Shown here in pieces: positions 26,001 to 29,000 of a DNA stretch of 64,000 nt (its first letter is position 1; each line of letters begins with the position of its first letter). The notes beneath the pieces were generated by a model. It did no database searches. It was not told the DNA's origin and saw only the letters and a program-made list of their open reading frames with translations. This stretch comes from Macrostomum lignano (lineage: Eukaryota): positions 85,220 to 149,219 of the forward strand of contig NIVC01001381.1 in the NCBI GenBank assembly GCA_002269645.1, given 5' to 3'. Made by a program: the position numbers and the translations under genes.

Positions 26001-29000
26001 GCTGCTGCCAGGAGAGGCATATCTGCAGATAATATTGTAAGCTCTTGCCGGTTATATTTGACATTTGACTCGCTTGACCGAGGAAGGAGACAGCAGACAC
26101 AACAGGATTGGAGACAGCAGACACAACAAGATTGGAGACAGCAGACACAACGGGATTGGAGACATCAGACACAACAGGATTGGAGACGGCAGACACAATA
26201 GGATTGGAGACAGCAGACACAACGGGATTGGAGACAGCAGACACAACAGGATTGGAGACGGCAGACACAAAAACAATAGGACTGGAGACAGCAGAGACAA
26301 CAGGATTGGAGACAGCATAGACAACAGGATTGGAGAGAGCAGACACAACCTGATTAGAGACAGCAGACACAACATTGGAGACGGCAGACACAATAGGAAC
26401 AGGTAGCAGAATTAAGCTCAAAGGTTTCCTTCAACTTTTTCTCACGTTTCATTTTTCGCCGTTTCATTTTTTTAGCAGCCTTGATTGGTTTGGCAGCTGT
26501 TTCGGCCTCTGGTGAAGGGCCACGTCCGCCGCGTAGACGCAGCACCAGGTGAACAGTGCAGCCTGGCGTCAGCCCTGCACTAGCCACAGTCCAATCTGAT
26601 TCCAACTGCTTTCCGTCAGCAACTAAACGAATCTGATCCACTGGGATGCACTGCCGTTCGTTTATTGCCTTCTTGAGCTCAAGAATACTTTGATTAGGCG
26701 TAAGGCTAACTGTGAACTCTTCGCTAGTGAGCGTTCTCACTTTGACAGTGAATTTAGATGGAAGAGCTGCGGAATGAACAGGTTATTCCTGTTCAATTTT
26801 TTGTCTGAATAAAAAATCTAACAAGCAATAACATCGAAAAAAAATCTCAGACTCACATTTAGCATCAGCTTGCCGCATTTGTGCGGCTTTCCGATTCTGT
26901 TTAACAGACAGCACCACCGGGTGCTTGTCGTGAACGCCGGCCAAAAGCAGCGAAGCTTCCAGATCGTCAAACAGCCGAAGAGCTTCTTCGCTCTTTCCGG
27001 TGTTTGACAACTCCTGACCATCAATGATACCGTCGGCAATTTGCGCGAGAATTTCCGCCTAAAAAAATTTAGACGAGTCATTACGAGAGTAACTATCCAT
27101 ATTGAGTTCTATTTAAATGCCGCGTTATTATAAAGTTTACTTTACGAGAAGGAAAAATGCCTCGTCAACTCCTTCCTTATAGAGGTAAAAAATTGGGACA
27201 AATGCCTCGTCATCTAACAAACTCACAAGCCCGTCGCCAGCCTCCTTGATCGGTTCCCAGCCCTGTGTGGCTAAGATATCAACCTTCTCGTCGTCTAGCA
27301 AAATTTGCAATCGGCCAGTCATGTCCGATTCAAATTTTTCGTCCTGTCAGAAATAGATAGCATTTACAATTAGTATATAACAATACCGGTCAGACAAACC
27401 TTAGAGATTTAGTATATTGTGAAAGTGTGCTACTATATCATAAGGATAACGATTTCATCTACCTTTTCACGATCCTCAACCGCTACGAAGCTGGTAAATT
27501 GGCAAGCCACTGAGTAGCGAATCGATAATTGAACCAGGTTGGCCTTCTGCTCCAGTCGCTTCAGCTGTAAATTTGATTGGGTTTGCTAATTTGTCACCTT
27601 TGAACTCTCAAATGAGTATACCTATTTTTATAGCTCTCTACCAATACCAGTTTATTGTGAACCTAATACGAGAATAACTTCAGTGGTGAACGCATCTGAC
27701 TTTCGCACCAAAGACCCCAGGTTCGATTATGTGCGCGACCGCACATCACGCCAACAACACAAGAGCCAACCACGGGGGTCAGAACTGCTTGGCTCTTTAA
27801 ATGACTGCATGTCGCCATGAGTTGCGACAGTTTCTCAAGTCAGAACTTCATTTATATTAAATCATCTTTTCTTAGAAACTCTCCGATTTAACTCTACCGA
27901 CTTTTCCGACTTTTTAGTTACCTGATGCAGAGCCGGATCGGTATCCAAGCTGCCAGCCTCCCAGTCGGCAATGAGGCTCCTAGCAGCCAGGGCGTGCACC
28001 ATGGAGCCGGTGGTAAAGCATAGCTCGCTAGTGAACACCGTGCAGCTGACTCGACAGTCGCCAGCTTTGGCATGCAGTGTCGCTCGTTGACATCCGCGAC
28101 CTTCGCGCGGCATCAAGCCATAGACAATCAAGCGCTGACCGTTGAACAGAGCCGACGGACAAGCAGGCGCTTGGCGCACTACAGACAACTCCTGACTGTC
28201 ACTGTTGTCATCATCGTCGTCAAGATGCCACTCAACGCTGAGCTCGGTAAGCGCCGGCGCGGTGAGCCGAGCAATCAGCTCGTCGGCCAATGCAGACCAT
28301 TTTGAACGTCTGGCCGGGTCGAAAAATTCCACGGAACCGCCGGAACCGGCAGCTCCGGCCAGCGATCGGAGCCGGTGCCGGTCTGGCGAGGGTCCAACCG
28401 AGCAGGCCAGCAAACGCAGGTGCTTGTTAGCACCTGAAGCGGCGACAGCCAGTGTAGCCTCTTTCGCTTCGTAGTGTCCGTCAGAAATCAGCAGCACCGC
28501 GTGCGGTCCGAATTCGCGCAGTTGAGCCAGGTAAGCCAGGTAATTAGAAAGATTTGTGCCACCCATATTGGGTTTTGAGGCTCGGATGAATTCTAGACAG
28601 CGATTCTGGACGCTTTTCCTGGAAAATTTATAACTCGTGAAGTCAGCAAATGGAATTTTTGCAGTTTAAAAGACACCAAGAACGAAAATTTAAATGCACC
28701 TTTTTAATAGATGCAGTGAACACTATATTAACGAAAAATGGTCCTTTTAGAAAAAATGCTATATGCTATTTAAAAATGGTACGCTTGAATGTTAAACTCG
28801 GAGTTTACAACATTTGACCGCCGACCCAATAGCCCAGACCCTAATCTGAATTGTCGGCAGTCAGGATTGTCTTTTTACCACATATTTAAAGAAATCTAGT
28901 TACTTTATAGCGCAAATTTAAAATGAATTTTATCAGATATCAAGAGTCTTTACTGTTTACTCTTTATGTACTCTTTAACGTATTGTACTTCCTGCTTTCA

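Follow-up and report, generated by a model that had tools for sequence, protein, structure and literature searches.

What is a ubiquitin-like domain with an intact di-glycine tail doing in the middle of a vault poly(ADP-ribose) polymerase? The question is raised by a 64,000-nucleotide stretch of the Macrostomum lignano genome (GenBank assembly GCA_002269645.1, contig NIVC01001381.1, positions 85,220 to 149,219 of the forward strand; hereafter the window), in which a gene that is very probably the PARP4 (vault PARP) of this flatworm encodes such a domain (hereafter Ubl). The Ubl is placed between the N-terminal part of the protein (a BRCT-like region, then PARP, VIT and vWA) and a C-terminal domain that resembles the MVP-interaction domain of human PARP4. 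The reading preferred here, with a confidence that falls a little short of even, is that the Ubl is an in-line mimic of ubiquitin which would stay in the chain as one unit of a bait or docking array.

A preliminary description of this DNA, made from its letters and open reading frames, had reported a 76-codon Ubl about 40% identical to ubiquitin at 26525-26752. These coordinates are correct, and the strand, which it left unstated, is the minus strand: six-frame translation gives the 76 amino acids from 26752..26525, within a minus-strand frame that is open over 26782..26357. Coding on the plus strand was rejected, as all of its frames contain stops throughout this interval. Aligned to ubiquitin by BLASTP, the Ubl is identical at 31 of 74 residues (42%, E=3e-19) without a gap, and the Pfam PF00240 profile is covered in full, from position 1 to 72 of 72 (E=1.7e-18; 66.6 bits, the cut-off being 25.4). 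Every residue that had been listed as retained is present (L8, R42, K48, H68, V70, and HLVLRLRGG followed by RGPSP). HLVLRLRGG is encoded at 26551..26525, the next codon is CGT, and the junction reads GG-Arg-Gly-Pro-Ser-Pro; nowhere else in the six-frame translation of the window does LRLRGG occur. Substitutions relative to ubiquitin include I44 to V, F4 to K, K29 to A and K63 to P.

Structure prediction, which had been proposed as a check, agreed with this assignment. The AlphaFold2 (AF2) model, calculated from an alignment of related PARP4 Ubls, is a beta-grasp with the order beta-beta-alpha-beta-beta-beta and a predicted local distance difference test score (pLDDT) of at least 95 over residues about 10-75. 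Its closest PDB structures in Foldseek are NEDD8 and ubiquitin, with target-normalised template modelling (TM) scores of 0.8-0.95, and ISG15 chains are among the sequence matches. From the RGG tail onward the pLDDT is about 55, and the tail and the linker that follows it are therefore predicted to be flexible. The match to the ubiquitin fold is far beyond chance, and the window Ubl is a bona fide member of the ubiquitin family with its recognition surface intact.

The gene was identified through its PARP-to-post-vWA part, which in a search of representative proteins is 99% identical to P0060 (UniRef A0A1I8HY60), an M. lignano protein named 'Poly [ADP-ribose] polymerase'; the further matches are full-length PARP4s at about 40-45% identity, and on these two grounds the gene was assigned to PARP4. 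Four PARP4s, including those of Nematostella, the bivalve Sinanodonta and the snail Biomphalaria, map by tblastn in collinear order onto the minus strand, and the Sinanodonta and Biomphalaria proteins align with their own Ubls onto window positions 26782..26501. The PARP, VIT and vWA regions all lie upstream of the Ubl, with the PARP domain in mid-protein and followed by VIT and vWA as in clade 5 PARPs (Table 1). The catalytic H (FHGS), Y (IYFAD) and E (REFAVFD) were found by inspection. In the vWA region the Pfam match is weak and the tblastn matches to the four PARP4s are collinear, with E values of 1e-15 to 1e-31. The BRCT-like exon, which is supported by tblastn, has no Pfam match at E<=0.01. 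The Ubl itself is internal, downstream of the ITIH-like region and preceded by about 1,250 residues.

The splice sites around the Ubl exon keep the reading frame on both sides. The exon upstream ends GCT AAA T|gtgagt and the Ubl exon begins ccgcag|CT CTT, both in phase 1, restoring a serine codon; its donor, AAA C|gtgaga, joins tatctgcag|AT ATG, again both in phase 1, to give histidine. All further linker exons have canonical AG/GT sites. When the 14 exons between 27058 and 16581 are spliced programmatically, they form one open frame of 1030 amino acids, closed only by the terminal stop, which supports one transcript with an internal Ubl. The Ubl exon is the first of ten consecutive linker exons (20092-26766, minus strand) that are all phase 1-1 and of lengths divisible by three (321, 261, 120, 90, 93, 99, 147, 102, 126 and 153 nt), and any one of them could therefore be skipped without breaking the frame. 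Such a run is what marks out cassette exons that have been shuffled and can be skipped one at a time, and many length isoforms are found for the PARP4s of Nematostella and Hydra.

The public M. lignano protein models give a less uniform picture. Three of them (P0060, P0209 and P0219) represent this locus or a near-identical copy, and they disagree with one another. In P0060 and P0209, the models that span the junction, the Ubl exon is skipped and QADAK is joined directly to the actin-like exon that follows. Both lack conserved VIT segments, extend into an intron and conflict with P0219, and because of these flaws and this contradiction their skipping of the exon is weak evidence. P0219 is titled 'Ubiquitin-like domain-containing protein', but its sequence begins at the actin-like exon, lacks a Ubl and translates some of the exons in different frames. 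From the spliced frame, the Ubl exon is probably included in M. lignano mRNA.

Downstream of the Ubl the linker contains pieces that resemble other host proteins. The first is an N-terminal fragment of actin with a near-exact D-loop. Among PARP4 actin fragments the D-loop is identical (100%) to that of actin in five (flatworm, mussel, oyster, Hydra and Nematostella), the strands flanking the loop diverge, and the copy ends just past it. Short acidic and proline-rich exons follow, three of which resemble the C-terminal tail of the ribosomal P-stalk. Beyond these, a large exon carries an Hsp70 piece (Pfam HSP70 E=1e-13, profile positions 379-484; PDB Hsp70 matches at E=6e-15). Among the Hsp70 fragments of PARP4s, several start at the interdomain linker, that of the window being one of them.

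The protein ends in a domain whose resemblance to the MVP-interaction domain has moderate support. In human PARP4 this domain is helical, comprises residues 1570-1724 and has no recognised homologs beyond a moderately similar domain of VWA5A (PMC10450202). A plain phmmer comparison of the window C-terminus with other PARP4 C-termini gave no match, and a profile was needed: seeded on lemur PARP4 with the window excluded, it scored 20 bits on the last approximately 90 residues, at the extreme C-terminus. All six near-invariant columns of the family are present in the terminal exon, its AF2 model is all-helical (pLDDT 79.6), and of 350,542 PDB chains the best match is 9bw6_B, titled 'Human Vault Cage in complex with PARP4' (probability 0.87, TM about 0.48, E=0.73). 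These profile, alignment, model and PDB results are individually modest, and it is because they agree that the predicted domain is taken to be MVP-interaction-like. The Hsp70-like exon was considered as the MVP-binding part and rejected, as the human domain is helical and the separate helical terminal exon fits it. The earlier outline of a catalytic half, a Ubl and a vault-binding half is therefore sound, but 'MVP-binding half' is too narrow a name for the last part, which also holds the actin, P-stalk-like and Hsp70 pieces.

Conservation was examined in 149 PARP4 representatives, scanned locally with the window Ubl (150 with the window included). A Ubl was found in 14 of the 149, always 50-170 residues past the ITIH-like region, and one protein has two copies; a later scan seeded with ubiquitin added a partial match, P0175, which brings the carriers to 16 with the window. 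The 14 proteins belong to Sinanodonta, Biomphalaria, Plakobranchus, Euglena gracilis, Diplonema japonicum, D. ambulator and other eukaryotes. As the three euglenozoan proteins come from transcriptomes, the Ubl is internal in real mRNAs of Euglenozoa.

Residues were counted in an alignment of 15 Ubl copies, window included, whose mean identity to ubiquitin is 56%. R74 is invariant, L8, R42 and L73 are each kept in 14 of the 15, and position 44 is always I, V or L. The tail is kept as RLRGG or KLRGG in 11 copies; the remaining four are three copies with RGS, RGS and RSA and the tandem pair's first unit, whose tail is lost, and one of the two Diplonema species is among the GS/SA variants. The residue directly after the di-glycine (P1') is proline in seven of the 11 copies that retain GG (binomial P about 3e-4 relative to a proline frequency of 0.15 in the next nine positions, shared ancestry being ignored). 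Lysines are kept unevenly, with K6 and K27 present in 87-93% of copies, K48 in 7/15, K63 in 5/15 and K29 in 2/15. The window copy is an exception at the junction, which is GG-Arg; it has alanine in place of K29 and keeps K48. Arginine also follows GG in the homolog P0203.

These positions matter for what happens to a ubiquitin fused to another chain. In the ubiquitin-fusion degradation (UFD) pathway, uncleaved ubiquitin fusions are marked for degradation via K29 and K48. Most deubiquitinases (DUBs) cut linear ubiquitin fusions whatever residue follows, proline being the sole exception (PMC3692480), and chains on K29 and K48 drive the degradation of fusions that are left uncut (PMC7344625). The GG-Pro of seven of the 11 related Ubls is the classical DUB-resistant junction, as in Ub-Pro-X fusions. 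UFD substrates are rapidly degraded through K29/K48 chains, whereas the PARP4 Ubls almost always lack K29 and often lack K48, losses that would blunt the UFD signal. Because surface and tail are kept, the junction is mostly GG-Pro and K29 has almost always been lost, selection in the PARP4 Ubl family seems to have favoured likeness to ubiquitin together with escape from both DUB cleavage and the UFD pathway.

The preliminary description had instead seen in the LRLRGG tail a built-in DUB cleavage site, and had set conservation of the GG in relatives as a check on it. The GG is indeed conserved, in 11 of the 15 copies. Cleavage at LRLRGG-Arg, whether constitutive and by host enzymes or triggered by a pathogen as a tripwire, would split the protein into a catalytic and a vault-binding part, leaving a free di-glycine at the end of the N-terminal fragment, and under the N-degron rules the vault-binding fragment would begin with a destabilising arginine. 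With the Ile44 patch and LRLRGG intact, an arginine at P1' that DUBs permit (PMC3692480), the same GG-Arg in P0203, and a tail and linker that are predicted to be flexible and exposed, such a cut is chemically plausible in M. lignano, and the authors of a PARP domain survey have speculated on viral proteolysis of this linker in some species (PMC10450202). It cannot be the conserved role of the domain, since most relatives have GG-Pro or GS/SA at the junction. A constitutive cut would moreover uncouple the enzyme from its vault anchor, leaving little point in a single polypeptide. As the junction is permissive in general, host DUBs would set off such a tripwire themselves, unless a Ubl only 42% identical to ubiquitin escapes them. 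The site is thus permissive in this flatworm as had been proposed, but the relatives speak against it as a general device, and cleavage is considered rather unlikely to be what the domain is for.

Two further explanations concern the exon itself and the domain in place. The Ubl exon could be an optional or unused cassette, acquired by exon shuffling or capture, rarely or never present in mRNA and without specific function. Ubiquitin, actin, Hsp70 and P-protein mRNAs are among the most abundant, which counts towards capture, and the exon has the expected form: it is 321 nt, phase 1-1 and leaves the frame intact when skipped, as it is in P0060 and P0209, where QADAK joins the actin-like exon; cnidarian PARP4s have many length isoforms. 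Those two models are unreliable at this point, however, and the exon is intact, with no stop or frameshift, conserved core and surface residues and good splice sites on both sides. A Ubl also occupies the same place in mollusc and euglenozoan PARP4s, the latter in sequenced transcripts, and an optional or unused cassette is judged improbable. More improbable still is that the Ubl acts purely in cis, as a shuttle signal to the proteasome or p97 that governs PARP4 turnover, through intramolecular control of the catalytic or ITIH-like region, or as an acceptor of ADP-ribosylation. Integral Ubl domains are commonly proteasome-docking or autoregulatory modules. Links of PARPs to ubiquitin-related domains have been noted earlier (PMC2964712, PMC4245714). 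In the window copy, K48 is retained. Regulatory integral Ubls are normally without LRLRGG, whereas few parts of the PARP4 Ubls are as well conserved as this tail, and a cis role leaves the actin, P-stalk, Hsp70, 14-3-3 and SNARE fragments of the same linker unexplained.

An in-line mimic, the explanation favoured here, can be put as follows. The single-exon Ubl, built into the variable linker of PARP4, would stay part of the polypeptide, and ubiquitin-recognising proteins of the host or of pathogens would find in its Ile44 patch and LRLRGG tail a surface for docking or a bait. Proteins bound there would be brought beside the PARP catalytic domain and the vault, where they could be ADP-ribosylated or sequestered. 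The Ubl would thereby be one unit of a mimic array, along with the actin D-loop, the P-stalk tails and the Hsp70 substrate-binding fragment. The sequences show an intact domain, its place in the frame, its recurrence in distant PARP4s and the residue patterns of the family; presence of the exon in the mRNA, the absence of routine cleavage and a bait or docking function are inferred. The explanation also draws on the similar modules in the same linker, on the use of several of their source proteins by toxins and on the properties of the vertebrate linker, all described below.

Several observations weigh against this explanation. Both same-species database models that cross the junction (P0060 and P0209) omit the Ubl exon, although they are visibly flawed. 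The statistic for proline at P1' takes no account of shared ancestry. The window copy has GG-Arg rather than GG-Pro and keeps K48, and its anti-cleavage and anti-degradation signature is only partial. The P-stalk-like exons of the window are degenerate (FGTSLFD as against MGFGLFD) and fall below Pfam significance. Finally, the source proteins are all very highly expressed, and part of the pattern could be due to neutral capture of their fragments by a disordered linker that tolerates them.

The other pieces of the linker are also not confined to this flatworm. In seed searches of the 150 representatives, window included, one or more modules copied from abundant hub proteins are present in 38: ubiquitin in 16, 14-3-3 in 13, an Hsp70 fragment in six (five besides the window), the actin N-terminus in five plus the same-species model, the VAMP SNARE motif in three and a P-stalk-tail motif in about nine. 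They occur in many combinations, and the window, with four kinds, has the most of any representative; the same searches found neither a 14-3-3 nor a SNARE fragment in its linker. Named taxa with modules are Euglenozoa, Amoebozoa (Cavenderia, Heterostelium, Pelomyxa), Cnidaria, Mollusca, Platyhelminthes and a millipede. In several relatives the linker contains ..EEEEDDDDDDMGFGLFDD.., which is the exact P-stalk motif, the Euglena PARP4 has a Pfam Ribosomal_60s match (profile positions 49-88), and one relative has a Pfam Synaptobrevin match.

Individual cases were recorded as well. The sequence ..DDDMGFGLFD occurs exactly in the linker of dictyostelids, a millipede and other eukaryotes. The 13 representatives with 14-3-3 domains or fragments in their linkers include P0062, P0111, P0117, P0119, P0128, P0136 and P0171, and fragments of the VAMP/synaptobrevin SNARE motif lie in the linkers of three to four (P0085, P0140, P0145 and P0171).

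What these source proteins share may be their use by toxins. Ubiquitin, 14-3-3 and actin have been tabulated as cross-kingdom activators of bacterial toxins (PMC4512716), and ribosome-inactivating toxins use the P-stalk tail as their docking peptide (PMC3280276). Of the four proteins thus documented as toxin activators or docking sites, three (ubiquitin, actin and the P-stalk) have copied pieces in the window, next to that of the Hsp70 substrate-binding domain. It is tentatively suggested, as a wider and distinctly more doubtful proposal, that the PARP4 linker is a combinatorial bait array, or 'molecular flypaper', conserved from Euglenozoa and Amoebozoa to animals. Such an array would string together copies of abundant host targets, docking sites and activating cofactors of toxins and effectors, namely ubiquitin with LRLRGG, the actin D-loop, 14-3-3, the P-stalk tail, the Hsp70 linker and substrate-binding domain, and VAMP SNARE motifs. 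With the baits tethered to an ADP-ribosyltransferase and to the vault shell, whatever binds them might be ADP-ribosylated or trapped in vaults. Where the junction is cleavable, as the GG-Arg of this flatworm may be, attack by a protease would set the enzyme half free, and the half bound to the vault would then carry an Arg-N-degron.

The PARP4 Ubl extends what is loosely known of PARP4-like proteins with appended hub-protein domains. Clade 5 PARPs were described as BRCT-PARP-VIT-vWA proteins, with no Ubl (Citarelli 2010, PMC2964712). Perina et al. 2014 (PMC4245714) reported 14-3-3 on PARP4-like proteins of amoebae, lancelet, sea urchin and Capsaspora, actin or actin-binding domains in Salpingoeca, Capsaspora and Acanthamoeba, and 'ubiquitin-related domains' in two PARP4-like proteins of Acanthamoeba, and took the appended domains to connect these proteins with signalling, the cytoskeleton and ubiquitination. 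For a clade 5 PARP, a ubiquitin-type domain is therefore not without precedent, and the flatworm protein is, like theirs, a PARP4-like VIT/vWA protein with extra domains past the vWA. That survey gives domain names only. It does not include the intact LRLRGG, the GG-Pro and K29-loss pattern, the epitope-like actin and Hsp70 fragments, the P-stalk tails or the SNARE fragments, nor the occurrence in Euglenozoa, molluscs and flatworms. A literature search found no account of an intact LRLRGG, of the GG-Pro/K29 pattern, of epitope-like truncations or of P-stalk, Hsp70 or SNARE pieces in PARP4, and a search for PARP4 with decoy, bait or tripwire returned no relevant paper.

In vertebrates the corresponding linker (human exon 30) lies in the same place, from the ITIH-like region to the MVP-interacting domain, and is likewise variable in length and sequence. 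It is disordered and positively selected and has been proposed to bind viral factors (Daugherty 2014, PMC4038475), and it has been suggested as a site of proteolysis or modification by viruses (Suskiewicz 2023, PMC10450202). The vertebrate linker is almost wholly disordered, with no recognisable domains, whereas that of the flatworm consists of folded or motif-like modules copied from host proteins.

Comparison with known ubiquitin-type proteins places the domain between several classes. As in polyubiquitin, Ub-L40, Ub-S27a and the constructs of the ubiquitin-fusion technique, a ubiquitin fold ending in RGG is peptide-bonded to a downstream chain. DUBs cut such natural junctions co-translationally before any residue except proline (PMC3692480). 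Natural linear fusions have an N-terminal unit identical to ubiquitin, in contrast to the PARP4 Ubl, which is internal, 42% identical and in relatives mostly followed by proline. ISG15 and NEDD8 are comparable in having a ubiquitin-like fold, 30-58% identity to ubiquitin and an LRLRGG or LRGG tail; they are free modifiers made from short precursors, whereas the PARP4 Ubl is encoded within a long chain. There is also a likeness in concept to the integrated decoys of plant NLRs and to the protease tripwires NLRP1 and CARD8, defence-linked proteins which carry a copy of a host protein or motif targeted by pathogens (PMC4246468, PMC5814044). PARP4 does not have NLR architecture and is not known to have a sensor or executor output, and the likeness to decoys and tripwires is functional speculation only.

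Table 1. Positions of the PARP4 domains, linker modules and exons within the 64,000-nucleotide window, in order along the gene
Feature	Position	Strand	Basis and remarks
BRCT-like N-terminal exon	37656..37976 (open-frame bounds)	-	tblastn, Nematostella PARP4 residues 44-112, E=1.6e-6
PARP catalytic exons	32185..33690 (open frames 33690..33364, 32871..32185)	-	Pfam PARP E=3.5e-7 and 2.4e-11; tblastn
VIT domain exon	31224..31793 (open-frame bounds)	-	Pfam VIT E=1.4e-32; tblastn E about 1e-50
vWA-region exons	27865..29772 (open frames 29772..29356, 28665..27865; bounds not exact splice sites)	-	Weak Pfam VWA_3; tblastn with four PARP4s
Upstream exon, post-ITIH-like segment AEILAQ...QADAK	26857..27058	-	Phase 1 donor; present in model P0060
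Whole Ubl exon, 321 nt, phase 1-1	26446..26766	-	Acceptor ccgcag/CT, donor AAA C/gtgaga; frame kept in spliced model
Ubiquitin-like domain, 76 codons (F..LRLRGG)	26525..26752	-	Six-frame translation, Pfam PF00240, ubiquitin identity, AF2, Foldseek
LRLRGG tail codons	26525..26542	-	Motif search; G75-G76 at 26530..26525
Post-GG linker, Pro/Ala then strongly basic	26446..26524	-	Translation; AF2 pLDDT about 55, predicted flexible
Actin N-terminal fragment exon (actin residues about 4-60), near-exact D-loop	25762..26022	-	PDB sequence search, actins E about 1e-13; splice sites; alignment
Acidic exon 1, P-stalk-tail-like	24625..24714	-	Splice reading, spliced model, motif comparison
Acidic exon 2, P-stalk-tail-like	23187..23285	-	Splice reading, spliced model, motif comparison; relatives with exact MGFGLFD at this place
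Acidic exon 3, P-stalk-tail-like	21291..21392	-	Splice reading, spliced model, motif comparison
Large exon	18367..19121	-	Hsp70 interdomain linker (DLLLLDV) and substrate-binding beta domain at about 18475..18786
Penultimate exon, phase 0 to 1	18030..18222	-	Splice reading; spliced model
Terminal exon, MVP-interaction-domain-like helical domain, then stop	16581..17011	-	Profile, alignment, AF2, PDB match

The introns of the gene are short, and nearly all of them (window 16000-38500) hold long micro- or minisatellite arrays, made of AGAC repeats or of 14-, 22-, 24-, 30- and 37-nt units, for example at 17046-18021, 26086-26398, 29895-30869 and 33668-34697. These arrays give long spurious open frames on both strands. 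Elsewhere in the window, a gene for a major-facilitator-type transporter lies at 10961-15661 on the minus strand and is apparently duplicated in part, in tandem: its N-terminal exon at 13541..12684 repeats the first part of 15661..14534 without a difference, and the transporter copies are separated by long repeats that look coding (TEDTPY / NRGHPLS). An open reading frame at 1852-3075 (minus strand) has a weak STAND-type NTPase match (nSTAND1), just under the Pfam cut-off, and another at 60778-61440 (plus strand) encodes a clear BTB_2 (KCTD-type) domain. Neither has an evident connection to the Ubl.

In vertebrates the positively selected, disordered linker is the only clue in PARP4 to what vaults and their PARP are for, a question of decades' standing. 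Recognisable copies of hub proteins in this linker in many other eukaryotes turn a vague idea of a connection between PARP4 and pathogens into specific experiments. The PARP4 Ubls also provide a natural case of an internal ubiquitin, with its di-glycine intact, that apparently evolved to avoid both DUB cleavage and ubiquitin-fusion degradation. If the bait array is real, it would give vaults and PARP4 a concrete mechanism in innate defence.

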